DNA of 64,000 nt from Magallana gigas (Eukaryota), in NCBI RefSeq assembly GCF_963853765.1, contig NC_088855.1, positions 42,346,001 to 42,410,000 of the forward strand. The letters run 5' to 3'. The notes beneath the pieces are model-generated. The model searched no databases, had not been told where the DNA came from, and saw nothing but the letters and a program-made list of their open reading frames with translations. Shown piece after piece: positions 1 to 63,460 of this stretch (its first letter is position 1; each line of letters begins with the position of its first letter). The translations under genes and the position numbers were made by a program.

Positions 1-149
1 TCGACATCACCTTTTTTTTTCACAATTCATTCTAACATATGCTAGCTAGTCTCAAACTACATTTAACCCTGCAGCATCCTGTTTAATAAATACAATAAAA
101 AAGCACCTTTTCAATACATTTCTTTTTATTTAAAATGCATTATTTGAGC

Positions 150-3100: not shown

Positions 3101-3594
3101 TGATCTATCAAACCATCCTGAAATCAAATCAGCTTATTCATCATTCATTTAAACCTGCACCCACAAAAAACTGGGCTTTGGGGTTACATTGATCGACCAA
3201 TAAAGGAGTCTAAAAATTGTAAATTTTTAGAACATAACAAAGGGAATCTTAGTATTCAACAGCAAAAATACTTACATCTTACATTATGAATTTTTATCTA
3301 TAATCTTTTTTCAATTTTTGACATTAATAATGAAAGGTTATCTTATTTTTTAACTGATGTCTGAGATGGAGATTCCATACGAAACAAACAAGGTAGAGTA
3401 ACGTAATTATCAATCTTTCTAAAAATGTTATTTTATGCACAAATAATATAAGTAACTATTTTTTTTTATAGACTTGTTACCTTAAATGCCTTCTCTTGAA
3501 GTTGTGCCTTTGAAAACTTAAGTATGCAGGCAAAGTTGAAAGGTTTTAGGCTGACCGTCTTGTGACGTTTGTTGAAGTCGGTTTGCTCCAGAAC
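150..3594 (-). CDS. NOC2L: NOC2L 3' exon block (coding exons 12-18)
   Basis: Seven exons from [26 protein letters not shown] to the acidic tail ending FELSDSD*. Acceptor tttcag|GTT at 3595/3594 is phase 0, matching exon 11. Candidate AATAAA on the minus strand at 125-130. Confidence 0.96.
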
Positions 3595-6500
3595 CTGAAA
3601 TAGACAAATCACACCACAGTTATCTCTCTTGCATTATGTACCCTTCTGCTGACGATTAATTACTGAAGCTAATTATACTGATTCAGGATACTCATAATAA
3701 ATATACCTGAAATTAGTTTACAATTTTATTATCTACTTTTTATCATAATATACAGTGTGTACATTGATAGGAATTCCAGTCTGTTTAGGATATCTGATTT
3801 TAAAAAGGTGATAACAATGAAAATTTAATTTCTCGAGGTGTAGTGTATAGATGATAAAAAAAAAAGATCTAAAATTTAATTAAAACATGGAGTAATTATT
3901 GTGTTCTTTTTTCTCCTTTATAATTTTAAGACAAAAAAAATTTCAATATTTTTTTATTTAAAACCACATTGACAACTTCCTTTTGCGGGAAAATTCCATA
4001 CCCTTTGACATGCTATGGAAAATTTATCAATAGGACTTATGGGTGATGGAGTTCCTGCTATTTCCATATACAGATCGTGTTTCTGCTACAAGTGAGTGCA
4101 GATGTTAAAACAGATATTCGAAACATGCAGCAATCTTACTAGAAATCTAGCTAACGTGTGAATCATTTTAAAACAAGTGAATCAGCTAGCTCATGTATAA
4201 ACTAACAGCCATGACATAGCATTCAGCAGAGGTCAAATCTTCTAACCAATAGAACAGACCAGCAAGCCCGCCATTTGAGCTCTGAGCACAAACAATTGAC
4301 TTCTGTTGCTCCTCAAATTCAGATCAACAAATCCAAAGCAGTAAATTGACTGAATAAATGGGATAAGTTCACCTTATCATACAGGATAGGCATGTGACCT
4401 GGAATTCGTGTCAGTGGGTCAGACGTTGCACTCAGTTCAAAGCACCCTTTCAGTGCTTTCTCCATGGGGCATTCTGATGTATTATCCAATCGATTAAATA
4501 TCCGTCATGCATGTGGGATCATGCATACATTGCGATAAACTTGGCAGAAGAAATGCTTTCCACTGTTGTTTTACCAACCAAAAAACCCTGTCTTTTGATA
4601 TGTATTATTTCATGAAGATTCCTTCTCCAATTTAGCAGCTGTTCTAATGAACAGAAGATGAAACAAGGTGTATAAGAATGAAATTCCTTTGATGAAAAAC
4701 GAGAAACTCTGGTTCAAGATAAAAACATCAGAAGATTCCTGAAAAGTGAGATAACCAAAATATAAAAAAAAAGTTTATAAAAAAATAAAGATATTACAAA
4801 AGAAGCCTGATCATATTGCAGGGGCTGAGTCACTATACAGTAACACCAGCACCGAGTGTAAACACAGAACTCATATTTTTATTTGGATAACAAAATGTTT
4901 CAGACATCCAAAAATAGCTTTCCAATTCTATTTACAGAGAACCAAGTGGCATTTGAATTGCTACATTTGCAAATGTTGGGAAAAACCTTGATCATCATTT
5001 GACAATTGGTGTATAGGAAATAAGCATGTCTAGCTGTCATGTTGAACTCTTACTTTCACAATTCACATTTCCTGCTAGGTAATCAAAGGAGACCAATTGA
5101 AATGTTTTTTGAATGAAAAGTTCTCGAATGATTTTCACTGTTCTTTAGTGCACTATTATGAAACTCGCGACAACCAGATCAAACTAATATTGATACCACG
5201 TGCCGTAAATAAAACCAACCGAATTTGGTATGGAACCAGAAAGAACTAGTATTTTACAATATATGTAGTAGAAATCTATTTTAAAAATGCATGTTCATTT
5301 CCAGGAAAGTTATTTCAATAATCATTGTTTGAATGTAGTAAATTGTAAATACACACTTAAGGACTAAAAAAAAAAATCACTTCCTGTGCACAGGTTTTCA
5401 CCCATGTTTTGAGTCATTGATTTAGTAATTTCAAGAGAAATTTACCCACACTGCATGTTATTTGTAATTATAGATTGCCCTGCATGTAGTTGTACTCACA
5501 CATTCACTATAAATAAAATACCTATAGCTTTACAATAGTTACCAGTACATGTGGGCGATGTGGTATCATCTTTACTACATACTAGTACAGTAAAACACGG
5601 TTATAGTGAACACGCTTACAATGAATTGATGCCTACAGCGAAGTGATTTTCATTCCCCATGACTATAAAATATGTTGTAAACTTGGATATAATGAATGTC
5701 GCTAATAACGAAGTAAAATCACCCGTCCCTGGCACTTTGTTATAAGCATGTTTTACTGTACTCAAGCAAAATAAAGTAAGTGGTTAAAACCACTTACTGA
5801 ACTAAAGAGACTCAGTGAGTTTGTGGATGAAAGGTCGATAATGCAGAAAAATATCCACATCGCTCTAAATCTTGTCTCATCTCTCAATGAATGACAATGT
5901 TAAGTAAACTCTTATTTTAAACACTGAAATACCATACTTTACAAAAGTACTTCTTCTCCTAGCTATGCTATTGAAACCTACAGGTAATGTTTATTTGTTA
6001 AATATAAAATTGGACAAGCAATATAATTCTCATGAATCGGTTTCTTTCAGACATCTAGAAGAATGTATACTGTATAGGTGTGATGTACTTTATCATATGA
6101 GAAAATATTAAAGGAATCTAATTGCAAAACAAATATTATTCAAGCAGACATCACAACAAACATCTATCAGTACAAACAACATTTACACTGCACTGTTGCC
6201 CACTTGTGCCATCTACCACTCATAACAGTGCACTCTCGGGTCAAAGTTAAGGTCATGACCTTTGGTGGAGTACATCTCCAAATTCACTCAGTAGACACTG
6301 AACAGTTCCACGTCAAGTGTGATTTATCACCACAGTTCAGTGATGTACCTGGAAAATCTGCAGTGTAATTAATTAAGAGTACATGCATACATATAAAAAA
6401 GGCTAAAACAGTCTGGTAAAAGCTAATGGACATTTTTCATTAAAATTAACAACAATTTGTCAAATTGTCAATCCTGCATTAAGTAGCCAGTGGCACACGT

Positions 6501-9500
6501 TTTTGTCTAAGCTCATTTCTCAGAAAGGATGGTTCAGAGACAGAACGATCTGATTTATTTTGGTACCAGGTGGTCCCAGTGCTTTGATTTCCAGACACAC
6601 ATCATACAAACAAAATCAAAACATTATCTTGGGCAGTATCTGAAAATCTTTATTTAAAGTTGCTGATTTTTGAGATTGTAAATAACTATCCACAAAAACT
6701 TTATACCTGTTTAACTCAAGGAATTTAAAACACTTTCCAGGACATTTTCTGAAAATTTAATTTTTCAAATTGAAAATTAATTTTCTTCACCTTTGTGGTT
6801 TAGTTATATAATATCAGAGTTATACATATGTAATTTCAAACTGCATGACTAAAACAGAACATGATTCAAGAGCATATGTTTTGAAAAGCTGATACCTCTC
6901 CAACTTGCACCAATTTACTTAATCTTTTACAAATACATTGAATAAATTCCCATGACTAAGTGTAGCTGATAAGCAAGGGAGTTCTGTTTTACTCATGTGA
7001 AGCTTCAACTGAATCAAAGTGTAGATGATGATGTGTTGAAGAAAGTTACGCAATCTTTCTCTGCAGGGTGGTTATTAGAAGGGTCTAACCCACTGACACA
7101 GATTAACATGTCTAACCACCAGTTTAACTTCAGGGTTCAATTAAAAAAAAAAAAAAAAGAAGTGTTCATGACCAAGTTTTGTTTTATGTTGTAAAATTTT
7201 GAGGTCTGCTGGATGTTTCATGAAGGAAACAACAGGTGTTCCTCGCAGGCAAACACGACTGGGACTAATATTGGAGCCCTATACATGTCCTGTCACCGAA
7301 TCGTGATCTGTCTGATTCAAGTATTTCATCCCACCATTACTCGGTTGATTGCTATCTGAGAAATTTGGAATATATAGTAGTTTTACTAATAAACCTTAAT
7401 TTCTCTCTCCAGATTAATTACAATATCTGGTGTTCTGANNNNNNNNNNNNNNNNNNNNNNNNNNNNNNNNNNNNNNNNNNNNNNNNNNNNNNNNNNNNNN
7501 NNNNNNNNNNNNNNNNNNNNNNNNNNNNNNNNNNNNNNNNNNNNNNNNNNNNNNNNNNNNNNNNNNNNNNNNNAATTGGCATTTGCAATTAATTAGTCAA
7601 ATAATGAACTGTATTGTAATCAAGAAATATTTCTGTGCATCTACTCAGGTTATTAATTCTCATCAGCAGCACAAGTATGTGTTTGATCTTTTCCAAATCG
7701 TTGCAGAACTAGTCATCTTGGCAGCTCAAGGCAGCAGCAGCTGGAGAGGCAGGGTATACCAAGGACATGTACTAGTAACCGACTACTGCTGTTACCTTCA
7801 CGGTAAAACAAAAACTCTCCGTCTTAATTAGCATCCTCTCCTGATAAGGAATTATCTTTCATTGTTTCTGCAATATCATATCTGCCAAGGTTAGTACAAT
7901 TTTTTTCCCCCCTTAAGACTAAAGTCATCACAGGATGACAAATCAATATGTTAAAAATGCAATCTTCCTCTACTAACACTGAAACACAGATTTTCTGAAG
8001 GTTAGAATCTAGAAACAGGGAGTTTAATACCACACTGGCTAATGGAAGTCCCCAGAGCTTTCTGATTGAAAGCCTGTAGGCTGGAAAATGTCAGCACACC
8101 TACGTAACAATGTCCAAAAACAAACAGAAATTGATCAGGATAAAAGAAATGCCATTTAAAAGTGTTCATTTACATGGAAATTAAAAACAATGCAATTTGA
8201 GTAGTATTCCTATTCCAGGACCTTTTAATGTAGCATTATAAAAGGCCCTCAACATGAAACAATGCATGATGTCTGGCATCCATAATTAATGCACAAATTT
8301 GAATACAAACTCTTCTATCTGTAAACCAGTATGCTTGAAGAGTCTGTTAACTACTAGAGCTTAATAAGATAGACATCTAAATTCCTCTTTATGTAAAGTA
8401 AAGAAAAAACACAGCCATCACAGGAAAATGACGTAATCTTAATGACTGTAGGTTGTTTTTGTGGGATAAATACGCAGACAGCAATATCATACAATATGAC
8501 ATGCCGAAAAATGCCTTGGCTTCGTACACAAACAGCAAGAATACCCAAAATCAAGACGTTTACTGTGTGGTTTTATTTTAACAGAAAAATAAATTATGCA
8601 TATCTATTTATTGCTTTTATTTTTTATTATAGATTAGAAAAGATTGATGCCTTCGTGATGAAATCTGAGGTTGTAATAATATACTAGGTACCTATAACTA
8701 AAACGTGTGACTTCGGCACATGTATGTATACAACTGATGCCAGGTACAGGAAATGATGTCACACATTTGCATTCTGAGGTATCCAGACACCAACTGATGT
8801 GCCAACAAACATATGCGCTGGGTTGATATCAACTAGACATATAAATATACTCACAAGTGAATGTTTTGGTTTTCTATGTGGGAAGGATTTGGTGGGAACA
8901 AAGAATGCATTACCTAAATTGGTTTGGTCTTTAATTAATGAAAAACAATTCAAAAAGGTTTGAAGATTTCTGATAAAGAAAACTGAATGAGTATAAAGAT
9001 TTGGTGGGAATTTTCAGAAGAGTCTCTGCATGGCTTTCTGTTTGACCTAAAACCTAGCCCCTCCCATGCCAGTAATACAAATCTGTCTGAGATCTCTAGA
9101 GTTCTAGTGGGTGGTCTGTCTGGCCGATTTCAATTCATTAGATTACTTGCCTCTGTCTGAAGTGTTGACTTCTGCTTATAAGTTCTGAGCAGATCACACT
9201 AAGTTGCGATAAGCTAATGACAGAATTTGATCAATTACTGCTGTAACATTTCTTCTTCATTAGGGTCTGTTCCTATTCACAAGCTTGCCTTTCCAAACCT
9301 TGACACCTTGGTGTGAAGCAATTCCCAACAATACAAATATTTACCAAAAGGTGAGAGTCTCTAACTAAGTCTTTCTATCAAACTAAAGTTCAATAAATCT
9401 GCGTCTTATTCCCGACCAAATTTGAGCGAGTACAGCTATGGCACTCGGTCAGGAAGCCACAAGCACACCAAGGTTAAACTGCAACAGTCTGCATGACACT

Positions 9501-12500
9501 TAAACCATCTTGAAGTCAATGGCTTTGTGCTGCCATATTAAAAGGGGTTATTACTGAGCAAAATCTACTGGAGTCATCTCTCAGACCAACTGGAAGTAAC
9601 TAGACCAAGTCTTTGTCTTTACAACCGATTACATGTGAATGTTCAGCCAGACTGAACATCAATGTACGGTCAATTAAACCCTTAGAGTTAGCTTCTATAT
9701 ATAGTGTCGTAAATGCAACTCTGTATTTTTCTTTCCCAATATAGACCAGTTTTATAAGTGTTTTATTTCAAAATACAATGCGTGGAAAAGTTCCACCTGA
9801 GAGAGGGAGTCAGTAGGTTAGCAGGCCAATGGCAAGCCGAGGTCAGTCCGGGCACACCTTAATATGCCGCACCTCAACACAGCACAAAATCATCTGTCAT
9901 AGCCCTGACAGCTTCCGCCATAAATCTATTACTGCCCTGAGTAAGATATAGACATTCCATTCAGCCCAAGATACTAAAATGAGACTTTTTATGCATACAA
10001 ATTCATTGCTTCACCTAACAGAGAGCTTCTTTTTCGATCATTTACGCTATTTATAAACAATGAAACCAGACTGTCTTCAATGAATGATCATTATAAAATG
10101 TTATAAATGGCTTTTTATCTAATAAAACTATTGTGATTATTTTGAGATGCTTATAAAAAGATCAGCTAATATTTAGTAATGTTTAACTAGAGGACAAAAT
10201 GTCCATAAAATTAATCTTTAGTAATACTAGTATATCTTGAAAGTGTATTTGTTTTTCCCGTTTCCTAGACAGCAAGTTAGTAATACATATATCTTCTGTT
10301 GTAGGCTATTCAAAACATCTATTTGTAATCTCTGCAGGTATCAGTTCTACAATGTCTACGGGAATTAAGTCTCATAATTTTGTCTATGATAAATTCTAAG
10401 GACAGTGAGACATATACAGACCTTCAGTCATTACATAAACTGAGGTATCACAGCATCTCATGAAAGTAGGATGCAATATTCTATCCAGGAAAACCCATCA
10501 CAATATCATTAGTTACAAGCCACCTACATTTACAGTACACATATAAGTATATTTATAATTGACTTCCTAATAATACGTTAACTATTACAAAAAACCACTA
10601 AACCACTTTTAGAAATAACTATTACACTGAAGCTGACAGAACCACTACAAAACTTTTAAAATGGGTCTCACATTTCCACCCATTCATGGTTACAATCATA
10701 ACTGAAGCAAGAAATTTCACACAGCTCATATTTATATACAACCAGAGACTTACATAAGCATTTAAGGAAAATATAAATACAGTTGAACTTCGTTATCTCG
10801 AACACTGATATCTCGAATACAATGGATACATGGAATAGTGAAGTCCCAACTACTTCAAAGAAGGGAGGGCATATTGCTTTGCTGCTATCTGTCAGTCGGT
10901 CGGTCCACCAACAGTTTCCGTTCATTTTCTTCACAGAGGATGAACATATTCAAATGAAATTTGGTATACAGGTTTATCATGATAATATCTAGATCAAATT
11001 TGATAATAGGTATGATCGAGCAATTTTCGACAGAGTTATGGCTCTTGGACACAGAAAAATTCCAGTTATTTGCAGTTTCTGCTCATTTTCTTCGCAGAGG
11101 GTGCACATATTGTTATGAAATTTAGTATACAGGTTTATCTAAATAATATCTAGGTCAAGTTTGATTTTGGGTATGATAGAGCAATTGTCGACAGAGTTAT
11201 GCCCCTTCGACTTAGAAAAATTCCAAATATTTGCAGATATATATATATATCTAGAATACCCAGATATCTCAAAGAGTTTAAACAGTGCCATATATATATA
11301 GTTTGAGATAACAAAGTTTGACTGTACATGTTACTCTGAAGATTATTTCCATCAAAGGAAATTGTTTATTTAAACTTCAGAGCACTGTCACATTTCTACA
11401 TCTTCAAACTGTTGTATTTTATGTCCCTCAATTAATTTTCATTCCGTTTTCTAATGACTTGATCATGACAGAGGAGAATTTCAGATTGCAGACATATTTT
11501 TGTAATTCTAGGAAATGAATATCATTAATCATTAAACCATATATTCCTTGGTTTATTTACCATGGCTTTCACTTGACAGCTGGTGAACCCAGTTCCTGGA
11601 AAATAAGACACAGATGCAGACCTGTCTGTGCATTGACTTAAGCTATGTCAATAAACAACATTTTATTAACACATTACAAAATAATACAAGTCAAATTGGA
11701 TAGTTTATTGACTAGATGTCTAATGAATAAACAGTGTTTATTAATTCAACTATAGTGTTTAATAAACACTATATTTGAATTATTTGTTGTAGATATTAAT
11801 TTGAAGGCAACTTAAGACCCAAAGAAATCCACCAAACTAGAAAAGCTGTCAATGTGACGGCAAACCAGGTTTTCTTTTGTGTGAACTGTATCCATAATCC
11901 ATTTGTCAACCCTGAATTGATAAACACTACCTCTCCAGACAAATGCAGTATTTTGCCAAAAAATGACGAAGTTCAACAGGTGCTATTTTTTTCATAAATT
12001 ACTAAAATTGAAAATCCAAGTAATATGCACATCTCTGATATATGTACATTTGATATGCAAAACCGCAACTTCCTATCTTGAAAACTGTAGGAGGATTTAC
12101 CCGTACAATAGGAGACCCCTATATGCAATATGAAAAAATGACTAAGATCAACAGCTAGTATTTTTTTCATAAAAAATCAAAAATCAAAATCTAAGTAATA
12201 TGCACATCTTTGATATATGTACAATTGATCTGCAAAATAACAACTTTCTATCTTGAAAACTGTAGGAGGATTTACCCGTACAATAGGAGAACCCTATATG
12301 CAATATGAAAAAATTACTAAGATCAACAGCTAGTATTTTTTTCATAAAATATCAAAAATTAAAATCCAAGTAATATGCACATCTCTGATATATGTAAAAT
12401 TGATCTGCAAAACAACAACTTCCTATCTTGAAAACTGTAGGAAGAGTTGCTGTGCACCACCCACCCACCTGCCATTTTCACCATTTCAATAACCAGATTT

Positions 12501-37600: not shown

Positions 37601-40600
37601 GGTTACAGAGTGATGCATTCCTTCACAAGTTGACTCACTAATAGAATCTCCATAGAAATCAGATCAAAACAAACATCAATCTATAAACACGGTGCTATGA
37701 TTCTGTCTTGTTGTTTCTATAGTCTACAGATCAAAAGAAACCTGACTAATAAACTGACTACCTTAACACACAATTATTTGAATTTCTTTTTAAGTTTTAA
37801 AAATTGATTTTGTATTGGTAGTGTATCAGAAATCAGTTGTGGATTTAGGAATGGAAATCTGATTTTAGACAATAAATCTGTTTTTTTTCTCAAAACTTAT
37901 TTCAATGAAGTCATTTTTTGAAAAACAGTTTTTACAGGTCTCATCCATTATAAAAAAATTAAGACTAAGGGTATAAGAAATCCCCTGTGTGTTAACTAAT
38001 GTTTTTGTTTTCCTCATTATCATAAATTCCAATTGCATCACTCTAGTTCTGCGCATTTTTTAAAAGCTTCTACGCATTCCTCGCTGAACTCAGGTGAATG
38101 TGAGCAATACTTATCAGTCAGAACGCATATGTATCAAGATATTTTTAGCTCTCACGCCTTAATGAAAAGCCTTTTGTTTTCCTAACATGTGTCCACTGAC
38201 AGTGAGCCAAATTTTTAAGTACTGGCATTATGGTCTTTTGGCATCTGCTGGTGATTGGGTCTAGAATTAGTATTGATCAAAACCAGCTTTATTTATAGAA
38301 ATGAGGAATGTCTGGATGAAGAGATTGTAAACAGAGCCTCATTATCGAACTGTTTGCGTAACTTTCATTACTCAAGCATTCATTATCACATACACATACA
38401 CTAGCAGAATGCGATTCTGACCAAACGGAACTGGTTATTGATGAGAATAATTAAAATAACATTTTTCATGTTTGAAATTGGTGAAAAAAGAGTTTCAGTA
38501 TAGCATGGTCCATGCATTTTATCTATCGAATATAAAATCCATGTTCTGCTAAAATAATAAATTCATAGAATATTGATTTAATGAATGAAATGATTGGGAA
38601 TATACTGAATTCATTGCAGTGCCTAATCCTGAATACAGACAAAAGTCTCTAGAATGTTTATGCGCCTTTTGTTTGTCAACTATTTCCTTCAAAAGTAATC
38701 TCCACCCAACGCATGAATTTACATCATCATGGTCTTTAATCTATATGTTAAATTCTTAAGTCCCTTAATCTTTCAGGGAGATTAAGGACAACCTTACAAT
38801 CCAAAACTTAAAAACATCTCCCATTCTCCCATCGTAACCTCAACTTGAACTAACAGTGTAATCAAATTAATGAGATTAAGGGACGAAATTTATCAAACAC
38901 TAACGACAAAAACGAAAAACCAACTTGACAAAACCAATAAAATGTTCTTTAAAATGGCAGGTTTAGACACAATTAGAGAAAAAATGATAATTGTGAAATG
39001 CATCTACTTCACACCTGTTGAACTTTTGTCACGGTGATCTTTAAGACATTTCCCTATAATGCTCATCTAAATTACAAATGAGTTCTACTTGAAGATAGAT
39101 TTATTGCGTTTCCTTGAATTACAGAAAAGATGACTATATAAACTTACACCTGACACTTGGAAACAAAGGTGTACTCTTTTTTGGATTCCTCCTGAACTTT
39201 TGGTACATAAATTGGTATCTATTTACGGTAGTTCTTTTAGAGGTGAGAATGGGTATTACCCGGTACATGTTTTTCTGCATCCAGGTGACCTCTGTGTGGA
39301 ATTAAGGCTTCCAGCACAAAGAAGACAACCATAGATATTATTACAATGTTTTATGCTGTTATTTATAACCTTAATATCATGCATTGGTTTGTGTTACTGG
39401 CTTACTGCATGTACATCCAATAAACGGGACAATTGAATTGTGCAATATCTCTTCAATTACCTACTGGCAAAAGGAAATTAAATTATCACTTAAGGTGGCT
39501 CACTACACCTTGAAATATTTTCTCAAAGCAGCAGAAAATTACTTAATTAGATAGATATTATAATGGATAAGAACTATTTCAGTCCAATAGGCAAAAAAAA
39601 TGTGCAATTTTGGATGAAAAATTACATTTTTGAAAATGTTATTCAGTAAACATGAACAAAAGCTCCAGTCGGATTCGAACTCATGACCTGCGGTTTAGAA
39701 GGCCAATACTTTAACCACTGAGCTACAACGTTATACACCCCAAATGAACTATATAAAAGAGTTTAACAAAACATTTAAATCGCCATCTTGTGGCATAGTG
39801 TCTTAAAAAGTAAAAGTCTAGGTGTAGTGAGGTACCTTAAATTTTTTCAAATCAGAAAACTGCGGAGATCTGAATGTATGCTCATGTATTCCGATAGCAC
39901 GGTGTCTACCTCAATATATTGTGCCAGACCATTATTACCAGACATGAAAAGCTTCCAATTTATTGAATTTCTGAATGCAGATCAAGTTTGAATAAAGTAT
40001 TTTTCATAAACAAAACACAAGATCGCACAAGAACATTCTACAGTTATCTTGAGCAGATAGGAATTTTAACTACTGCTGTTTGTCTGAGTTTTATCTGATG
40101 GCTTCACACTGCATTGTTCTAAAGAGTGCATTTTGTATTGAGCATTTTATGACCTACTGAGCCAGTATTTTGATGATTTTGTAGATTAAGTCCAAAACAG
40201 TGAATAACAGGCATTGTTTTCATACAGTCATGTGTGTTTTGATTTGTTAAAATATATGCGCTAATTAATTTCTATAAAGCCATAAAGATTTAATGACTGA
40301 TGACAGCAATTTGCAACAAGTCGCAAGGCTCCAAAAATCATATTGATAACCTATTTTCATTGTATGGCCCTATATGCCACAGCTGCTAAGCAATTTATTC
40401 AGCTACTGAATTGTTCTTTGGAATGAAAGAATTTATTTAAAATGAAAAAACATATAAGAAAGCCCCCAAAAACAAACAGTCACAATAAAAAAATATATTG
40501 ATGCATTGTATGGGGAACTTGAGGGAAATTGCAAATAGTTAAGGAGGCAGGCAAGTGGAAATATTGAATTGGACGACTAAAATAAAGGGAAAAATCAGTT

Positions 40601-43600
40601 TAAAATAGAATGCCTTTCTAATTTTTATCACTGATTAAGGTAGTTGTATTCAACATAAATTAGTAAGAAAAATATGCATGTTTTAAAGCTATCTGAAATG
40701 TAATGGTATCTAATGTAAATTGGTTATTAATCTTTATGTATCCTTTTACATTATTTTAGTCAATCATAGGTAAATGTATATGTGTTTATATAATGCGTAA
40801 AACCTTATTAGCAATAGAAATAAGTAAACATCACATACACCCCTATTAATGTGACCCAACCTTAAGGTGACAAGAGTTGGATGCAATTCAAGAATTTCCA
40901 AAACCAATCCGACATTTACATTCAGACTATAATGCAAGATTTTGGCTTTAAACCAAAAATATTCCCAGGTAGTTATTGGTATTATCAATGGATCATGTTT
41001 ATATAAATGTTATGACGTAAAGTAGTCGGGTTTACACCAAGGGAAAAAATGATCATATGTCAGATGATGCTTAAATAAGAACGTAATAAATCAAAACGAT
41101 AAAGTATTTCTCCCTTTATTCTATAAAAAGCTTAATACAGTGATAACAACAAATCAAGTTGTTTTATTTTTCTTATAAGTTTTTTTGTGGGTGACTTCCA
41201 TTTCATATATTGATAGTCAAATTTCAGCAGCTAAAAATTATACATATATTCATAATTTCTTGGAAAAAAAACCTCACTCTCATACCATTAAGATGTAATT
41301 ACCAAGTTATCGGTAAGTAGACATAGATAAAAAGTCAATATTCAAATTTTCTTTATTGTCACATTTTAAAGTTAATGCGAGCAGGTGTTTAATAGATAAA
41401 ATTATCCTTAGAATCTATTTACCGGTATTTACAGAAAAAAGAACCTTAAACTTCAGAACTTACGAGAAAAAAAATGAAGTGAAAAAATAAATAAACATTG
41501 AACATATGTTGCCACAAATAGTGTCTCCTAATTTATAAATGTATTAAAAAAAACAAACAAAAGGGTCTTCCTTGTTTATTGTGTTAATACTGCCAATTTT
41601 TACAGAAGTAACTTCAAAATTTATGCAGCAGGAAATAAAGGAACCAATCAAAAGCAGATAGCAGGTGCCCTTGTTTTCCTTCAGTAGTTGGGATTGGTTA
41701 ACAGATGTTTACCTGGACACTCCATTGTTGTTAGTCTTCAGCAAGGGGTGGGGGGGGGGGGGTATTTTCTTTCCCTTTGTCCCAGGGTATTTCTTTGTGT
41801 ATTCTAATCACATTCCAGTTACTTAATGTATCAGGATACAAAACAGAATACTGTACTCAAATATTGTTGCTTTGGCATTTGCACATTTACGCAATCATAT
41901 TGAATGCGATGCCATTTTTATATTTTTATTTAATATTGGTAACTTGTTGAAAAGATCTCCCGGAACATACATTTTTGATCAATTTAAAAAATTCAGTCAC
42001 TCGATCCTTATACGAAAAGTGTTTTTTATAAATGTCCCATGGTACCAAATTTTAAATGCTTCGCCTTTTTGATAAAAAGGTTTTCCTGTTGAACTCATCC
42101 TACTACTCTTTTTAAATTGAATGCAATCAATTGGAATTTTTAACAGCTATAAAATATACACGTAATTACCTTAGTAACTGAACTTGAAATCTCAACTATT
42201 AACTGAGATACTGTAACTCGGTCATACATTTCAACCTGTACTGTGCTAAAATATTTAAAATGCCATAACTGTGGGAAAACACTCATTGAAGAAAATGATA
42301 CACCCCAAAAACGAGTTAGGTCACCAATTGTCCCTGCTTTAGACAGGATTTTTTACGGTTCTTAGTCAAGCACGGAAAAACATTTAAACTTCCTAGTCTG
42401 TGTTGTGTATCTAGTTGTGACTTAAAGCCCTGATTTTAAGGGCCCTCTGAATGCTGCACACTGAAGAATTCTAATTTAGCAGTGAGAGTGAGCTGGGTGG
42501 GAAAAATATCACCTATCCCAAGTTGAAAATTTATGAACAAAGTTGTTTGTAAATTTTTACGGCATATAATTTATGTCAAAAATCAATTTCATTTAAAATT
42601 GTAGTATATGTATATATATAGAGTCTATTTTGTACTGATAAACTGATAAGCAGTGTCAATGTCCTATGAAGTCATTCGAGGATGGAAATTGGTGCATGCT
42701 GGGGAATGTTTTTAAAATAAAAATACATGTATGTCACCAGTTCCATGCAGGTGCACAACATAAAACCCCAATGCACTGCATCACCTTACCCCTGCAGAGA
42801 GGGTTATCTATGATGCAGTAATAGATTTACTTACGTTTCTAGCTAAATTACTTAATTTAGCAAGGAAGCCTTAATATTATTTATTTGCATTGATACTGTA
42901 TAAAGATATAATTCAGGTTGTTCCATTCTTTGAAAGGTGAAACAAATATCTTATGATTCGAGATCTAGCAAAATTATTAGTAATTAAATTAGTTAAGAAG
43001 CTCTAGCGTTGATACAGTATACAGATATCATTGAAGCTGCATGAGTCCTTGAAAGGTGAATCAAATACAACAACCTGACATATTTCCGTAGACAGTCAAT
43101 AACAAACCTGATGTGTTTTTGTTTTGTTGTTTTGAAAACCAAAACCTTTTGTATGTAATTTAAATGCAATAAGAAAAACATCAAGCTACCTTGTTGCGAA
43201 AGAGTCTGGAATCATTTTATTAAATAACAGCATCATATCATTCAAGTTAAAGGCAAAACAAACAGATATTTTCTTAATAAATCTACATATGAATCATTGT
43301 TTGCTTACTTATTCCTGTATCATATGTAAAACATTGTATACACTGAAATTTTAGAGTCTGCATACGTTAAAACAATTATAAGATACATATGCATGTTTAT
43401 TGTAAATCTTCAGTGCCGAAAGGTTCAAACAAATGTATTATCTTTCCTTGATGTATACTTGTATATGCATTTATGATTTTTCACATTGAAGATATAATTT
43501 TAGGTATTTCTGCAACTTCAATATGTGTATTACTTTAAGAAAAAGTGATTTTCATGATTTTTTATCATAGCTGTGAAAATAACCTTTACATATTTTATTG

Positions 43601-46600
43601 TTGATTGTTTGCTGACAATATTTCTACTGTCTGATGAAAATGAACAAACATACCTCAAATGTTTTCAAAATGATTCTAGTAATCTTTTATTCTTCAATCA
43701 GAAAGTTTCAACTTGACTTTTTTCCAACTATAAAGGTCTGTCTCGAACCATGGCCACATGCAAAGAGAGCAAACGTCAACTTTTCAGCCAGACTGGTTTT
43801 TTAATTGGGGAGGGGGAGGGGGGAATTCGTTACAAATCCAGGCTATAGTTATATTCTTATAGGAAACTTAAAACTTTCTGGTTAATATTAAAGTAGTCCG
43901 AGTATCGCACTACGTCATAATACGGATTTTACAATATTGGTTCGACTTTTACAAAGCGTTTTTGATACCCGGTATTGATTTTGCTCTACATCGCTGTTGT
44001 AAACAATGGCAATAATAAGCAATTAGAACGGTGATATTTGTATTCTATGAGAGATAGAAATGATTAATGTTGAGAAACTCGACTCTGTTAAAGTAAAATG
44101 AAAAAATGAAGTTTCTGATTAACCAGGATCTCATGCAGGTAGGCTTATATCTTCTTTGTTTTGATCCCCCCCCCCCCCCCCCCCCCCCCGAATTTTTCTT
44201 TTTCTTTTACTAAAACCGGTTTAAATTTAGAGACAGAAGCTATTTCGAATTTAATCAATCGTCAATTAATTAATGTTTAAATGATATCTAACATTGTTGA
44301 CAGATTTAGGCAGAAAACTGTAGCAAAATGTGATTTTTACGGATTTTTTCGTCAGGGTCTACTTTGTTTAGAGCTTATAGCGTGAAAAGTAATCCGTCAA
44401 CATATAATTTATTTTACCAAATCTTTTTTCTAAGATGTCAATCTTTAGAATAAACACCATGAATCTAAGTTTGAGTCCATAAAATAGTAAAAAAAACTTA
44501 CCAAACGCGTACTAGCATTGCATTTTTTGTTTTCTATTTTGATACATCAGGTCCATAAAGCGTACTTACTTACAAAAATTTGCGCAAAATTATTGATGAG
44601 ATATGGCTTAAATAAACATTTATACTCTATTTTGTATGTTCAGTTCTAATTTTCCCAAAATTGGTAATTATTTTTAGGAAAAACGGACGTCTGGCAAAAT
44701 TCATAATTGTCAATAATTTTCGCAAGGGGGTACACCCATCTGAGAGGTGATAACAAACTAGCATGTAAACATACATATTTTCTTTTGTATATGTATTGCT
44801 AGAATGTATATTTATCATTTAAAGCTAAGCTTTTAATGATTGAGCCCATTTAGTGCCAAGTATAGGACTACCTTAAAGGAAAAGTTCGACTTAATAAACA
44901 CCTTAGGGAACAAAAATGAAAAAAAAAATCTTCTTCCTTCCAGAAAACATCTCCAAAGTTTAATATATACTGGTTTATTTTCCCCCCGTGTTATTTTCGC
45001 TCCTTTACACTTGCAAACCATTTCGCTCCACCTTGAATTTGCCCACACATAGTTGTACTAAAAGAGGTAATATGAGAAATTTAAATTCACTTTGTCTTAA
45101 ATTCACCTACTGACAATGAGGGCAAAAGGATCTAAAATATAATGGGGTAAATATATCCCTGTATTTGCCCCTATGTAGACTGAGTTTTAAAGAGGAGATA
45201 TCCATGCAAATAAAAGAAATTAGACTGTTAATTTACTACAATGTACTGGTTAATTAATATTCTTTTAATGGTGAATTTCACACAAACTTAAGTACTGTGA
45301 CTTGCGGTAAATTTCATGCCTATTGGTAAACCAGACATTTCTTTGACAAAAACTTTATCATAAATATTTATTGGCAAAAAGGATCATACTTCCAAGGAAA
45401 GATGTACCAAGTAGTAACTTTTGGAGAGTAAGCTTTCTGGCATATGCTCACACATCTCTTCACAAAAAAATCAATTTAATGCTGCATGTTTTATTAAACC
45501 CAGAGTAGAAGTTTTGCATCTGAATAGAAATAGTATGATCTACGTCATAAAGCCCATAAATGGGATGATCACTGCAGCAAATTCAGATCTGCTCTGCATG
45601 ATGACAATAAAACCATACAGTGTGCGTTAGAATGGCCAGCTGTTACAGCGTTGTAAGCTGAATGCAACACCTACGTACATATAACTACATAGAAATGATT
45701 TGACAGCAAAGAGTAATGAATAATCGACAACACATTGCCAGCATCTCTGTACATATAGCTTGGTGTACACTCTGTATTACATCCTGTCATATCAGCCAGA
45801 ATGGAAATAATAAAAACAGAACAAGAAAATAAACAGCAGAAAAATCCAACATCACTTTCCTTTCCATTGACTTGATTTTAAAAGACAAAGCAACATGTGT
45901 TAAGAAATTATTATGTGCATGTACCTAATTGTGCACAAACTAAACAAAATATCTGCTGTACCTATTTTCAACAATTGATTAATCCCAAACATGTCTGTTA
46001 ATTAATTAAATACCTTTATTACAATAAAATACATTTCCACCAAAACACTAGAATACATGAAATAACTTCTACCAGTATTTAAAAGAATAACCTGGTTTAC
46101 AAACATGTAAACATTGAAATGTTTCAGCAGGAATAGAAAAAAGATTTTCTAACTTGTCAACTGATTATCAATAATTTCTAATTAATATTTCATATTAATT
46201 ACAGTAGTTATGGTACCTTCACTCACACACAACAGTCTATCACTATAGCTAAAGGGCAATTGCAAGGAAGAGAGTTTGTACTTTAGTAGATAAAACAAAG
46301 TTCATCAGATTAAACTCAATTATAAAAATACAGCCTCGTATATAACAAGGAAAGCAGGGATGAAAATAAACTCCTTGCATTCTTTGCTTCAGGTCAATCT
46401 TTAAAAAAAAATTTCTCACAAGAAGTTGGTCTTCTATGCATGTATTTTTTTTTCTCTTTTAAACTTCAAACCAAATATTTTAGGATTATTTTCTCCCACA
46501 TATTTACTCATCGACTGAAAATAGAATTCATACAGCTTTAAGTCCCTGCCAATAATAATATTCTGACAAAATAACTACTAGGAATGTCTGGAACAGTCAG

Positions 46601-49600
46601 CCGGAGGTCCAAGGCCATGACCTACGCCAATTGACCAACATATTTTCCTCGCATGTCCTTGGAGGGTGGTAGGTGTTATTGTAGCTACAGGTAGGACTCC
46701 CACTACCAGATATATTTAGTATGGGCATTGAGTAATCTGATGCTCTAGGCAGCTGTGCTATTGGCTGCCAATCTCAGTGTTTGGCCACAGAGGGACAGAA
46801 CACTACATGTATATTCATCCCAACTTTTAACTCTACTCTCACTTAAATTCTGCTGACTGATTGCATGTGTTACAATCTTAATAGAAATTTCTTCAAAGTC
46901 ATTTTGAACTTTTTTCTATAATTATTAAGATGTCAGCACATTTACATTCCTAAGTTCACAGTGAAATTTGACAATGCAAAAATTCGGTCATTTTAGCAAG
47001 ATAAAAACCTTTCCTTGACCTTAGATATTGACAAAAAACAAAACAAATGTTTGCGATGCAGCAATCTTTGCACCCGGTCATTCTACATATTCACGTGGGG
47101 ATAACCTGCCCAAGTGCACATCTGATCATGTGATGCTAGCAAGCAATCACTTCACGTGAGTTCAATGGAGAAATAAATACTCTGCCTATTGACATGGTCC
47201 CATGGGTGTCATGTTACCATTATTATCATCCCGTGTCATGTTATGAACAGTTTTTAAAAATGTTTTTAAAAACTGCATTATACATGTATTACTAAAACTG
47301 GACAAAATCATGTGATCTTAAAGTTTCATCACTACCTTAACATGTGATGTTAACTTTAAAAAAAGAAATGACTTTCCATCAATGATGACATTGAGGCATG
47401 TATCCCCACTTATATGAGGATCTGTAAGACAATTATTGACGTCATATTTCATGCTGTAATAAATATCTCATCAACTTTCTGGACCCTCTCCAACTGAAGT
47501 GTGCATGTACTGGTGTATCGAAACAGAAAGTGAAATGTATAGTATAAGTACCTTTGGGTCTTTGAAAAAAATAATGAATTCACCAATCAAATATGCTTGC
47601 AAAAATGTTTGGAGGGACAGAATAAGCGTTAATGGTCCCAAAGCTTCAATCAAGAGTTGAATTTTAAAATAATTATGGGTACAACAATAAAAGAAAGACA
47701 ACTCTTGCTGTATTTTAGATTGTAGAACCACTGTAAAATCTTGCTGTGAAGCAACCAGTATTCTGACTTTGATCTTGTAAACAGACACTTGTAATATTTC
47801 ATCCTTTCCAGCAAATTCAAAATCAGACATTTCATGAAATCTCATGATTATGTCTACATGTATTAAGATATCTCTAAATTCAACCAGTGGAATTAATTTC
47901 ATACTGATATATTAATTTCACCATGTTGATTCCATGTCTAGATTTGGAGTCAGTCATTGCTGACAATCAGTAATGAGGAGATAAAAAGACAACAAAGTTC
48001 CATGACCAGGTACACCTCATAATAGAGTTCAGACCATTGGTACAATGTCTTACCTCCAAAATCAGTGGCAGAACAGGTATGTAAGTGTCAGTAGCTTTAG
48101 ACAGGCGATTCAAGGCCTGAACCAGGTGAAACCTCAGAGGATAGTACCTAGCTATAGGAATCAACCTACAAGAGAGAGAGCAGTGAATCTGTTGTATTCA
48201 TCAACCACAGAATTTCAACCTAAGTCACTGTTAGTTAATTTTGTTTGCATTTTTCTCCATCTTGTTTTACTGCTTTAAACCAACTTTTATTAGTGACAAC
48301 ATAATGTACACAGGGTTATTTTCACCCGGAGTTATTTTCCCCTTCTACACTTGCAAACAGTTTCGCCACATCTTAAATTTGTCCAGACTCGCTTGTGTAC
48401 TAAAGAAATAGCTTGGAACATTGGATTTCGGCCAGTCTTTAATTCGCCCACTGACAACGAGGGCGAAAGGGACGAAAACAATACAGGGGCAAATATTTCA
48501 CTGTATACAGTAGTTTTGCAATAAACCAGTGATAAAAATTGCTTTGCCAAGACTACCTGGTAGTTCTTTACTATCAAACCTATGTTTATAATCTTAAACA
48601 AAAGAATGGCTCATGGCAAGATAAATTTTCAATGACAATGCACAGTTCTCATAAACTTTTTAAAGTTATTTTTTAAGTCATCTACATGATGGTGATGATT
48701 TCAAATGTATACATATTGATGTAACAAATAGAATTTATTGTAACAAACAATTAAAAAGATACCTGCTATTCAAAAGTGATTACATAAATAATTTAGGACT
48801 TTTTATGTGATAAAGCAAACAATACGTTTCCCCGATTTTAACAAGGTGATGTTATTAAACTGTCAAAACATTGGTATTTAATCTTTGGTAAGAAAGCCGA
48901 TAATAACTGCCAAACATGACATTTATAAACTGTATCATTACTTATATGAAAAAACCCAGTAAGGACATATAGTGCATCTAGAGTTCACATTTAAGGTAAT
49001 GATCTATACTTTACAATACAATCAGCCTGTAGGTTATTATGCTTGCCTGTGCCCTATTGAATTGAGGCAGAGGCAATACCGTTTATCTATCAATTTTCGC
49101 GATGATCTAGTTTTTGCTTTCTTTGCGATCTATTTTAAATCGCAAATAATTGAATACACAGAAATTAAATACTGTATCATTTTCTATAACAAACTTTACA
49201 AATGGCAAAGAATGACTGACACAAATCAAAAATGTTACAGATTTTCCCTATTTTCGCAAATTTTTGACAAACGAAAAAAAACCGGATGTACGGTAGATTT
49301 TATTAAAAGAACCATGCTGACCTTGAAACCGAGTTATAACAAATCTACTTACTTGATTGTTCCCAAGATAGTCTGAGTGAGCGGATAAATCAAAGGTCGG
49401 AGAGCCTCACTGGGGTGACTGCTACTCAGTAATCGAACCCAGAACTCCAAGCACCGAACAAACTGCCAGTTGTACACCGCTTGACAATTCTCCTGGAAAT
49501 GAATTCAGTATTATGTTCAATTTAATATTTTCTAACCTTTTCAGTACAGTCATACTATATAATTCTATTACAAATACATGTTGGTATATATTCATTGATA

Positions 49601-52600
49601 TATATATCAAAAGTATTGGACAATTATGGAATTCAATGGTTGTAGACAATGAAGGATTGAAGATAAGAAAAAACGTTTAGCGTAGTGTAACCAGGCCTGT
49701 CTTTGAGTAAGCAAAACCTCTGTAACATTTCATTTGACATCATCTTTAAGGAAGGAGTCTTCTTGTTATTAAGCATAACTCTTATCACAACAAATTCATG
49801 AAATTTTGACACAGTAAAACAGATCATAAAACCAAATGATTCTATCAGTTTAATCAAATTTGACCCCCTTGTTTTCGCATAAAGGTCAGGTCAAGGTCAC
49901 TACCTTATTCTGCATGTTAGCTTCAAGCTGTATATTAACCTTGAGTTCTACTTTGAAGGACTCGGTAGTATGGTCAGTGATAAATACTACCGAGACATCA
50001 ACGTAAAAAAAAGAATCAAATGTGCCCATGCATTAACAGTCAAATTTCGAGGAAGATATAAACACGAAGACTTCATTCATCATTTTAGTCCAAGTAAGAT
50101 AAGAGAAAGCAATACAACCTATAAAATCTAATAAATCTGCCAAAAAATTCAACAATTAGGATCATATAAAAACCAAAATTTTGTGACAGAAAAAATAAAA
50201 TTAAAAACCCCAAATGAGTAAACTTTACCAATTGCATTTAAAGTAAAAACATTTTTACACTTCTATGAGATTAAAATGTTATAACCAGGAACATGTCATG
50301 AACACAATTTTCTATATACACTTTCTTCTCCTTCATGAGTTATCCTTTTTCATTTTATAATCAATCAAACCAGTATTTGTACTTGTAATTGCTCAATTAA
50401 GATTTTGATGAGCATATACTTTAATTGTACATTTACATGTACTAGTAAGAAATCAGGAACACCTTTTCCCTGTAAACAATATCAACACCATGTTAAATTG
50501 ATATGAAAGGGTCGGCCAATTCAATATTTTCAATGAGTGACTTGAGTCGAAGATGATAAAATGTGTTTATAATAAATTTGAGACATGGTCATGATTTGAA
50601 CTGAAAATTTTCAACATTTATTTGTTTTATTTATGAAGCGAGATACACTATTATGTAAACAAGGCTTGCGCAAAGATATAATTTATAACAAAATGAGGTG
50701 TGACAAATACTAGAAACTGTTTACTGTTGATTGTTTTCATGAATAACTTGCTAATGGAATAAATACTCTGAATTAAATGATTTTTTCCAATACACAACCT
50801 ATGTACCGGTAAACAAAAACAAGGTACAAACCTGTTTATAACAAAGAATTGTAATTTATATTTCTCTTTTTACTCGACACCCTCCTTCAGTTGGACAAGT
50901 CCATTACAAGAGAGTAAAATGTCCTTATTAGACTTAATTCATACACAAGAATTGTGGACATTTTATTTGATATAAAATGCATATATATATGCATCACTAA
51001 TAAACACACAATTTAATACAGTGGCAGTGCAATTTTCATCAAGAATCAAATTGGAAACAATTATCATATTACATTGTATGACACAAACTAGCATTCCCCA
51101 TGCTTCAATGCACTTCAATGCAATATCATCTTTATTTTATTCCATATCTGAATTAACTTTACCAAAAAAAAAGTTTCTTAATTTCATAGGCAACAAAAGT
51201 ATCATGTGGGTTTCTCCCTTCTTCCAATCCTCTAGATTTTATGTTTACACCTACTATTTTATATTTTTAGATATCTTCAAAATTCCTTTTTACCATCAAG
51301 AGTTTCTAAATCTATTATGGATATTATTGAAATATTTTTTATGGATTTTTATTTTCTCTGCACAAGTTTTTCACCTTCATAATCCTAGAAAATCAGCATC
51401 CCTGTAATTTTGCCATGTGACACTCACCTTCTTTTTGACAGTGATGGCGTTGCGTAGATGGATCGCCAACTGTCTGATGTAGATGAACGCATGTTGGTAG
51501 GCCTGGGTCAGGTCAATGGCGAAGATTTCGACCATGGACATCTGCATGAAGTTGATCAGAGGGATGGTGGTGGGGGAAGTGAACTTGGAGTTCTTCACAT
51601 ACGACATGTACATTGCCTGCAAATCAAGTCCACTGAATAATTTCAGATCACAATGTGAAATTCAATTACCTTGGTTATCACTTAATGTGCTGTTTTTTTT
51701 TACGAAAGATTTTTCTATCTGTTTTATTAATTAAATACTACAAAAAAACCTCTCTAACTTTTAATAAAATTTCTTCACAAAATTAAGTCTCTTCATACCT
51801 ATGGTAAAAACAATCCAAAGAGAGGGTTTTTAATGTAAACAACTTCTTACCATAATTTAACAACCTTGAAAATCTATGACAATTGCTAATTCTTTCTCAC
51901 AGCCAGCAAGGAAACAATTTCTAAGAAATGGAAAGATTATTTGGTAAAATTATTAAGACAGCCATTTCGTACCTTCATACAAGGTTCAAGCAGGCTTTTT
52001 TTGGAGATTAGCACCACCTTGTTCAGACACAGGAAGGCCAGGACTCGCGTGGTTTCCTCCCCTTTACTCCACATTGATATCATTTTCTAGAAATATCAGA
52101 TCAAATTTGAATTCTGTAAACATTTAATTTCTGTTTGTCAAGTCGTGTTTAAAGTTTTAAAAGTTAATATTTTGGATACAATGGGAACAGGAATTCATTA
52201 TGTTCTATTCTATAATATGAGCAAATCAAATAGATATTGGCTTCACAGTTGTCTTCATATCCTTTCCAATGATGAGTTTTGCCTTAATGGAAAGATCAGA
52301 TACGAAAGTATATATACATATATTAAAAGTGACATGAGATTAAGGTAGGTAGTCACCTTCATCATGAGTTTGACCAGTTTTGGGAAGACTGAGTAGAAAG
52401 CCACCAGTCTGTGTACATGTTTCAGAATCACATTCAACATGGTCGACTCTGTCATCTCACCCAATAACTGTAAAAAACAATCAGACATATATAACAAAAA
52501 TATCTCATTTCCAGTTCTGTAAATTATATTTTCAAAACAGATCAACACATCTCATGATCACTGGCGGATGTACGTTTTTTTCCCCCAATCTTTAATGAAT

Positions 52601-57325: not shown

Positions 57326-58469
57326 GCTTTCGATGTGCTGTTTATAGTAATGGGAATTATTTGTCTTTCGATCCCGATCAAAAAAAGACTTATTAAAATA
57401 TTGGTGGGTTGGGGGGGGGGGGGGGGGTCATACCTGTAACGTGTAACTGTCTCACAAAAAAAAACCCCACAGGGTATATACATGTATTTTGATCTTTTAA
57501 ATAGTCATGTCAAGATTTTGCTCGTAAAGTTTTCCAAAGCTGTATTTATTTTACATGTAACATCCCCTCCCAAATCAAAATGTTAGTAAGATATTGTACG
57601 ACGAAATTTGTTAATAATTTTGATGTTGTGCAAGTGCAGTTTACCAGTTCTGAGTTGAGATTTACTGATCAAATCATAATTTATTCTATACATGTACTAT
57701 ACACTAAACCGTGGCATTACTTATTTTTTAAGCATCATTGGATATATTAATGTAAGCGATCATGAAACCGATTTTAAACTCATCTTTGATTTATTCAATC
57801 AAACATTTACAGTTATTTGTGGTTATTCTTTGATTTAACATGCTGATATGCACATCCTCAATTTTAAATAGAAGTTTAGTCGAAAACATGAAATATTTTA
57901 ATGATTTTATCTCCAATTTTATATCAGATTAACTATTCAAATATGTAACTATCTATGTACATATTAATAATAAAAAGTAATTCCTGTACAATGCTATACA
58001 GTTCAAGTTCTTTATTTCCGTAAAAACAATTGACTTTATGTAATAGGTTTACAAAATAAAAATATAACATAGGAATATGATAAGTACGTGCATAAAAGAT
58101 TTACAAAAAAAAAATAGTTTATAATTTTAACCGTTTATGACATAGTGTACTTCTGATCATAGTTTTCGCTAATTTTTCGCAATGAAGGTGTTTAAATTAA
58201 ATCAGAAATATGTCTTAAAGGTATACAATTAACGAAAAAAGGAGTAAAGAGTCAGTGGTTCAGACTTCTGTGGTGGAGGGGGGGGGGGGGGGGGGGGGGG
58301 TCGATCCTGTCCTCAAGCATGCAAAGCCCGTATGAATCATTTTGCTGTTTATATATTTACATGCATCTACGGTACCTCTGATTCATTTCATCAATTATTA
58401 ATGAAGAGTGATTAAAAGTACATGGATTACTTTTACTGCCTAAACGTTACACAAAAAGAACAGTCCTTA

Positions 58470-59500
58470 TATATGAATGTTACCATGGTAACTACAGCTT
58501 CTTGGAAGTTTGAGGTCAGCCTGCGCATGTCCTCGGAGTCTGTGCTCTCAATGTTGTTGGTCAATTAGTATCACTTAGTCAAGAAATATTTTACGCAAAT
58601 TTGACAACAAAGGCACATATATTCGTTGGGTTAAAATTTCGTTGTTTTTAAATCAAATACAAAATTTCGTTAGGATTAAATTTCGTCTTATCATGGTCTC
58701 TAAAATGAATTACGTATCAGCACTGTATTAATGAATACTTGGGGGAAAATTTGTCATGGATTTAATTTCGTTGATAAATGCTGCCAACAAAAAAAAAAGA
58801 AAAAGAAAAAAGAAATTATATAAATCCTCAACGAATATTTTTGCTTCTACATAAAGACATCAGTGAACGATGTAAGAAATTATTTTAGCTTTTTAGATGA
58901 AATCTGATCAGCTTAACAATGCATTAAAGGAAAAATACCTTTTAAGAAATGCATTTTGTTTCAAATCGATCTTTTTCTTTCTATATTTTCGGGTATAGGT
59001 CGACCCCCCCCCCCCCAACTTTCCAAAACGATGTCATGCATATGAATACTGTTTTCTCTCTAAATACTGTTCTGCCTGTTCTTCCAAAAGTCTAATCTGT
59101 TCAAAGAACCTAGATCTGCCTCTGTATGGATTCCCAGGAGCCACGTGCACTGGAACATGTAAGCAAATATATTTACGTGCACCAATTTGTAAACAATGGA
59201 AACCTATAAACTATAGTGTGTATATAAACGTCTTTAAACTGATGATATTAAAAATAACAAATTTCCATGGTTATGTAAGTGTATATGTAGGATTAATTTC
59301 ATAATATTATTTCATAAAATGGTATTGAAGAAACTGACGTATGTACACATAACATCATTTGTTTACTACTGAGCGTACGAAGGTGTGTACTTTTTAGTGA
59401 AAGCTGATTGGCCAATGAATGCATTGAATATGTGGACAAACATTACATTCAGTTGTTGAACGTGAGCAGGAGCAGTTTGCGATATACGCTTCGGAAAAGA
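58470..59500. promoter_or_regulatory. Head-to-head NOC2L/CDA promoter region
   Basis: Divergent genes. X-box-like palindrome GTTACCATGGTAAC 58479-58492; E-box CACGTG 59142-59147; double CCAAT palindrome ATTGGCCAAT 59407-59416; Inr-like TCAGTT 59449-59454, about 50 nt before the CDA ATG. Confidence 0.55.

Positions 59501-63460
<3,960 letters not shown>

Follow-up and report, generated by a model that had tools for sequence, protein, structure and literature searches.

How does a housekeeping gene of the Pacific oyster come to carry a second gene inside an intron of more than 40 kilobases (kb), and how much of that intron serves its guest? The question is raised by a stretch of 64,000 nt from Magallana gigas (assembly GCF_963853765.1, contig NC_088855.1, positions 42,346,001 to 42,410,000 of the forward strand), referred to here as the window and numbered from its first letter. 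In the window, NOC2L, a gene of ribosome biogenesis, is split by a giant intron 11 that contains an intronless gene on the opposite strand. Our analysis indicates that the locus is probably a genuine host-guest pair of old standing, in which a compact control region of about 10 kb accompanies the nested gene and the greater part of the intron is ordinary.

NOC2L occupies the minus strand and comprises 18 exons, the first coding exon lying near 57325. The public M. gigas NOC2L protein was fitted to the window with a script that uses GT/AG splice sites. Exon 11 ends in ...CTGATTTTGGAG (...TTGGAG) at 48054 and is followed by the donor GTAAGA, and the acceptor ...TTTCAG at 3595 precedes exon 12, which opens with GTTCTGGAGCAA at 3594. 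The residues encoded by exon 11 end in LPLILE and the join to exon 12 is in phase 0. The script returned a length of 44,459 bp for intron 11 and exact lengths of 107-1935 bp for eleven other introns, with the five remaining introns falling in the same range as judged from the spacing of high-scoring segment pairs. In tblastn searches with the Aplysia and M. gigas NOC2L proteins, matches were colinear, exons 11 and 12 were consecutive and no residue was missing; neither query matched a NOC2L exon inside 3595-48053. RefSeq protein XP_011436218.3 matches exon 11 of the window exactly and spans the exon 11-12 junction, so that the giant intron is already modelled in public annotation. The host belongs to the Noc2-domain family, with full-length colinear similarity to homologues that carry Pfam PF03715. 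An earlier note on this DNA, made from the letters alone, had described an 18-exon NOC2L in which the exon 11 donor (48053) and the exon 12 acceptor (3595) join in frame across this distance and the other 16 introns measure 107-1935 bp, and the splice-site fit, tblastn and RefSeq together bear this description out. The antisense intronless open reading frame (ORF) that it reported in the intron is likewise confirmed, being transcribed, unspliced in stranded polyadenylated (polyA) RNA and present in other molluscs, as set out below.

The nested gene forms a transcription unit of its own. Two stranded polyA runs give a read depth of 25-230 from about 25116 to about 26800, in a single read direction that corresponds to plus-strand RNA. 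Molecule ends pile up at 25116 and 25121, coverage drops near 26800 and splice joints are absent. Reads in a single direction and without joints identify the nested gene as intronless and antisense to NOC2L. Of the roughly 1.7 kb of mRNA, about 95 nt are 5' untranslated region (UTR) and about 0.95 kb are 3' UTR. The gene thus has its own strand, a sharp 5' end and its own 3' drop, and its transcript lies wholly inside one host intron with no host exon between, whether the main form (25116-26800) or the longest extent (24777-27660) is considered. RNA runs contain 65-87% of the words sampled from 24200-27200. High-depth contigs spanning 24777-27660 were found in a further run and may represent longer forms of the transcript. 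Weak coverage in the opposite direction over 23-25 kb of the stranded polyA data fits NOC2L pre-mRNA. Logan contigs of 4.7-5.4 kb were considered as a long mRNA and dropped, as their size equals the distance between the flanking repeats (22990-27660), at which contigs possibly break. The public M. gigas models of the gene are truncated: in UniProt A0A8W8KCI5 (185 aa), 29 internal residues are skipped like an intron, at a place where the polyA reads show no splice, and A0A8W8K8U8 has 120 aa.

A single-query search recovered 98 homologues of the nested protein and a profile search 110, and every named one belongs to a mollusc. The species include oysters, a pearl oyster, mussels, limpets, snails, slugs and an octopus, and the roughly 110 homologues in bivalves, gastropods and one cephalopod are evidence of selection on the protein. 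An alignment of 23 members contains 39 invariant columns, which are grouped in short motifs: an N-terminal MAMFPNAxxGYMPFV, KxYxVTLxD, KSKRK, a basic RKRQRTIS site and DSYTH in an acidic tail. Searches against Pfam gave sub-threshold noise only and no domain, and an Atlas search for look-alikes gave scores of at most 0.67 and no usable lead. The AlphaFold model is mostly disordered (mean predicted local distance difference test score, pLDDT, of 57), with a hairpin at residues 44-64 and a helix at 115-127. The product is thus a small, mollusc-restricted protein that is predicted to be largely disordered. Two paralogues each are found in Babylonia, Nucella and Candidula, and one in the bivalves examined.

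The nested gene carries its own promoter at about 25000-25120, with a TATA-like box and, farther upstream, the 17-mer CAGACAGACGTCAATTG. The core of this 17-mer, GACGTCA, resembles a cAMP response element (CRE). The 17-mer is identical in Ostrea and Octopus, differs by one substitution in Pinctada and by a one-base insertion in Pomacea, and no match to it turned up at the loci of Mytilus and Lottia; 0.05 matches are expected per shuffled window. In Octopus and Pomacea the element accompanies the gene with no NOC2L exon within 10 kb.

The surroundings of the nested gene stand out from the host by their CpG content. The ratio of observed to expected CpG (CpG o/e) is 0.1-0.6 across most of the NOC2L body and intron and rises to 0.8-1.3 at about 22.5-33 kb, with a mean of 0.86 in this island against 0.40 in the rest of the intron (Mann-Whitney p = 1.8e-6). 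CpG depletion is thus locally absent, with depleted DNA on both sides, and the place is kept in the relative: at the Ostrea edulis locus CpG o/e is 0-0.33 in the first 6 kb and 0.55-1.2 from there to the end, with the switch at the orthologous boundary. The corresponding 52-kb intron of Pecten is CpG-depleted throughout and has no island. DNA methylation in M. gigas is mosaic, targeting the bodies of housekeeping genes and generally sparing promoters (PMC4378273). Together with this published pattern, the CpG profile suggests an unmethylated island inside a methylated host, and the segment at 22.5-33 kb would lack methylation in the germ line. Milder CpG preservation (o/e 0.6-0.8) is seen in two other parts of the intron, 14001-17000 and 43001-45000; the latter overlaps a repeat copy that also occurs in intron 10 (44961-45164 and 48302-48506) and may be a young insertion. 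In Lottia gigantea (KB202283.1), some 10 kb of CpG-preserved DNA with strongly depleted flanks begin at the orthologue of the nested gene; no host gene is annotated there and no NOC2L exon occurs within 10 kb.

Conservation of non-coding sequence is concentrated in the same region. Alignment of the window with the Ostrea locus gave 13 single collinear blocks within 20246-30882, in the same order and on the same strand. One of them covers 24206-26532, and eight to nine are downstream of the main transcript. Of the downstream series, the block at 26680-26878 ends in the 3' UTR and those up to 27660 fall within the longer contig; these downstream blocks are candidate regulatory elements. About 35% of the island can be aligned with Ostrea; for the CpG-depleted flank of that Ostrea locus, an internal control, the figure is about 3%. 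Against Pinctada, Mytilus, Lottia, Pomacea and Octopus, the alignable part of the window is limited to the coding sequence and short pieces of the promoter, and in Pinctada, Mytilus or Pecten no non-coding sequence outside the promoter has an alignable counterpart. Where sequence could be compared, the signs of a regulatory domain are thus confined to about 10.5 kb around the nested gene, as judged from base composition and alignment.

Nesting recurs in other bivalves. The Ostrea edulis orthologue LOC125673815 is antisense inside a Noc2-domain gene that extends past both ends of the 20.7-kb locus. The NOC2L gene of Mytilus edulis is 171 kb long; annotation places a single gene within it, the orthologue of 208 aa, which is read from the other strand, and adjacent protein accession numbers agree. 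These arrangements make the nesting at least as old as the common ancestor of oysters and mussels. In Pecten maximus, 51.8 kb without any N separate the orthologous exons (residues ~531; locus 16242-68009), and neither tblastn nor a family profile run on six frames found a trace of the nested gene in the NOC2L locus. The usual bivalve tree places scallops inside the group that unites mussels and oysters, and the absence in Pecten would on this tree be a secondary loss or a relocation. The host itself varies widely in size, with gene spans of 70 kb in Pecten and 241 kb in Haliotis rufescens, besides that of Mytilus.

Linkage of the two genes is looser among gastropods. In Pomacea, C0Q70_04064 and C0Q70_04067 lie on one chromosome three locus tags apart, and the tag order suggests neighbouring genes and not a nested pair. 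Two paralogues of the nested gene occur in Babylonia, one of them on the NOC2L chromosome; on account of this copy the genus is not counted as unlinked. The nested-family gene and NOC2L lie on different contigs, of unequal length, in Elysia crispata, E. chlorotica, Plakobranchus, Candidula and Nucella. Within ±10 kb of the gene in Pinctada, Lottia, Octopus and Pomacea there is no NOC2L exon, and nesting in a larger intron would lie beyond that range.

The remainder of the intron, about three quarters of its length, is probably ordinary CpG-depleted filler that includes repeats. Repeats within the window itself account for 4% of the intron, and dinucleotide runs are present as well. Pfam recognized no transposon domain in the ten longest of the intron's other stop-free frames; an Atrophin match in one intron frame was rejected as an artefact of a GA microsatellite. 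Neither Rfam at the gathering threshold nor a tRNA scan gave matches in the window. Multi-copy repeats are at least two in number; those at 22565-22990 and 28262-28369, which flank the nested gene, show very high RNA depth in two directions, with many variants, loose ends and strand-switch joints. A GA/CT run at 59680-59825, upstream of NOC2L, translates to an Arg-Glu repeat in each of the three minus-strand frames, and similar runs occur at 18309, 27671 and 31554. At the Pecten maximus NOC2L locus (14181-14650), a 20-residue piece of an exon (residues 476-495) is repeated four more times in tandem in the following intron, with a spacing of about 115 nt. In both Mytilus and Pecten, NOC2L is immediately preceded by a cytidine/dCMP deaminase gene in head-to-head orientation. 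When the first 3 kb of the Pecten locus, which include part of that gene, were compared in translation with the window, no match appeared, the 6.6 kb upstream of NOC2L included. All features are collected in Table 1.

Table 1. Features of the NOC2L locus and its nested gene, in window coordinates.
Feature	Position	Strand	Details and basis
NOC2L exons 1-11	48054-57325	-	tblastn with M. gigas NOC2L, 97-100% per exon; start codon ~57325; exon 11 at 48054-48165
NOC2L exons 12-18	153-3594	-	tblastn with M. gigas NOC2L and junction fit; exon 12 at 3481-3594
NOC2L intron 11	3595-48053	-	44,459 bp, GT..AG, phase 0
Assembly gap, 135 N	7439-7573		inside intron 11; estimated length
Nested gene, coding sequence	25211-25855	+	ORF of 214 aa; homologues, invariant motifs
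Nested gene, main polyA transcript	25116-26800 (approximate)	+	unspliced; 5' ends 25116-25121; contig of one run 24777-27660
Promoter-proximal 17-mer	25005-25021	+	core GACGTCA; ~100 nt upstream of 5' end
TATA-like ATAAAT	25094-25099	+	~20-25 nt before transcript 5' ends
CpG-preserved island	22500-33000		within CpG-depleted NOC2L body
Second CpG-preserved patch	57000-59000		o/e 0.89-0.93; NOC2L 5' end, presumed promoter
Upstream Ostrea-collinear blocks	20246-20483, 23280-23530, 23828-23926		Ostrea alignment
Promoter-region block	24206-25115	+	72% identity with Ostrea; part of block 24206-26532
Downstream Ostrea-collinear blocks, first four	26680-26878, 27024-27177, 27564-27639, 27900-27984		70-83% identity
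Downstream Ostrea-collinear blocks, last five	28045-28091, 29202-29379, 30075-30143, 30363-30482, 30733-30882		70-83% identity
Short tandem arrays, 161-nt and 175-nt units	10912-12482		further copy 19766-20054
Multi-copy repeat	22565-22990		39-nt palindrome at 22817-22897
Second multi-copy repeat	28262-28369		RNA read depth pattern

The length of intron 11 might be ascribed to an error of assembly or scaffolding that misplaced either 7574-48053 or 1-7438, the true intron being short. The assembly gap, an unbridged run of N of estimated length that separates exons 12-18 from everything else, gives this idea its footing and weighs against our reading. Each flank of the gap occurs only once in the window and has no overlap with the other, and because the gap is intronic the reading frame is unaffected. 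No gap interrupts 7574-64000, which carries exons 1-11 and the nested gene, without exon 12. Exon 11 and the nested gene are 22 kb apart with no exon 12 between, and the intron therefore measures at least 40,480 bp whatever the gap hides. Exons 12-18 lie within 1-7438, in the correct order and on the correct strand across the gap, RefSeq models the gene likewise, and a giant intron or the nesting is repeated in independent assemblies of Ostrea, Mytilus and Pecten, the last with a locus free of N. An error of this kind is thus extremely unlikely. It is also conceivable that the intron is neutral and has grown by insertions along with genome size, the guest having been inserted once, for instance by retroposition, and carried along passively. 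The guest is indeed intronless, the Pecten intron is large without it, the span of the host varies several-fold between species and the promoter element is kept in Octopus and Pomacea away from any NOC2L exon within 10 kb. This account largely overlaps with the host-guest pair that we favour, but by itself it leaves the sharp island shared with Ostrea and the downstream blocks unexplained, and we consider it very unlikely as a complete explanation.

A more demanding alternative is that of a genomic regulatory block, in which enhancers of the guest would be spread across the whole intron and NOC2L would be an inseparable bystander. It would explain both the size of the intron and the linkage, and it agrees with the nesting kept in Ostrea and Mytilus, the closeness of the genes in Pomacea, their common chromosome in Babylonia, the collinear non-coding blocks common to the window and Ostrea and the recurrence of giant NOC2L genes in Mytilus, Pecten and Haliotis. 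The conserved blocks and the island, however, occupy only about 10.5 of the 44.5 kb, and beyond oysters only the coding sequence and the short promoter element align. The Pecten intron of 51.8 kb has neither ORF nor island, which means that a large intron persists without the nested gene, and the different contigs in Elysia (two species), Plakobranchus, Candidula and Nucella argue against a lock valid for all molluscs. Targets of regulatory blocks are typically developmental regulators, usually transcription factors, whereas the nested product has no Pfam domain, no DNA-binding domain and a mostly disordered model. We therefore regard a regulatory block as unlikely. The earlier note had proposed that NOC2L is locked around the regulatory domain of its guest; what survives of this is a candidate domain of about 10.5 kb, marked by CpG content and the Ostrea blocks, and not the whole 44 kb. 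The intron-wide regulatory landscape that it envisaged is not supported, the rest of the intron being CpG-depleted and unalignable where comparable and the Pecten intron being large without gene or island. Of its two promoter-like clusters and motif-dense segments, only the nested promoter (~25000-25120) and the CpG-preserved 22.5-33 kb could be located. Its proposed check, a large orthologous intron with the same ORF in relatives, came out positive as nesting in Ostrea and Mytilus and negative for the ORF in Pecten. The conserved linkage that it considered possible holds for oysters and mussels as nesting and for Pomacea as proximity; it does not extend to the five gastropods with different contigs, and Elysia, Plakobranchus, Candidula and Nucella speak against a lock common to all molluscs.

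Our preferred reading of a host-guest pair with a compact control region has to face several further points that weigh against it. The absence of methylation in the germ line is read from CpG o/e alone, and the term filler from CpG depletion and failure to align, with a repeat content counted within the window only. The Ostrea sequence compared is the equivalent of about 20-34 kb of the window, and conserved elements elsewhere in the intron are possible. Nesting in Ostrea and Mytilus was read at the level of the host gene. The exon 11-12 junction is backed by genomic and protein alignment and by the RefSeq model, the RNA reads examined being those over the nested gene.

Under the host-guest reading, intron 11 of the housekeeping gene NOC2L hosts an independent, intronless gene of opposite strand. 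This gene and about 10 kb around it have escaped CpG depletion and hold the only non-coding blocks that can be aligned with Ostrea. The stretch may be a regulatory domain that is unmethylated, complete in itself and carried along with the gene. We hypothesize that the nesting persists mainly because the guest could leave only through an exact rearrangement that does the host no harm, to which constraint on local regulation may add, and that scallops lost or moved the guest and kept the large intron. A stronger version would have the island epigenetically insulated, so that it resists the gene-body methylation brought by transcription of NOC2L, and the need to preserve both island and enhancers would be what has tied guest to host since a time before oysters and mussels split. 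We consider this version unlikely. If true, it would amount to an invertebrate methylation valley inside a transcribed host intron, with the scallop representing the intron after loss of the guest. No description of an unmethylated island surviving inside a transcribed, methylated host intron was found in the literature.

The locus provides a well-bounded pair of host and nested gene that has been kept together across pteriomorph bivalves, and the scallop offers a natural comparison after loss. A simple measure, CpG o/e, marks the likely control region of a nested gene inside a methylated host and makes it easily testable. The analysis also draws attention to an uncharacterised, strongly conserved protein found only in molluscs, whose promoter element is common to Octopus, and corrects public gene models that insert a false intron into the nested gene. 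The understanding of gene regulation is left unchanged. Literature searches for NOC2L with nested genes and for nested genes of oysters returned nothing relevant.

Among known systems, the published mosaic of gene-body methylation in the Pacific oyster (PMC4378273) is matched by the CpG-depleted body of a housekeeping gene and by a promoter region and a lineage-specific gene that are not depleted; the unmethylated state at this locus, unlike in that study, is deduced from sequence composition only. The likeness to genomic regulatory blocks (PMC3514665, Irimia et al. 2012, and the vertebrate studies behind it) lies in a housekeeping gene long kept beside or around an unrelated gene and in conserved non-coding blocks within an intron. 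The blocks described here, in contrast, cover about 10 kb and were detected in the comparison of two oyster genera only, their target cannot be recognised as a developmental regulator, the two genes appear unlinked in several gastropods, and the scallop intron lacks the target; the main text of PMC3514665 makes no mention of NOC2L. The closest resemblance is to nested host-guest genes in animal introns, in which the guest usually has the opposite strand and the intron is unusually long; in common with them, a complete, independently transcribed antisense gene with its own promoter and 3' end occupies one long intron and is retained across related lineages. In comparison with the usual nested genes, the guest of NOC2L is intronless, confined to molluscs and set in a sharply bounded, CpG-preserved island of a CpG-depleted host, and the host intron stays giant in a scallop from which the guest is absent.

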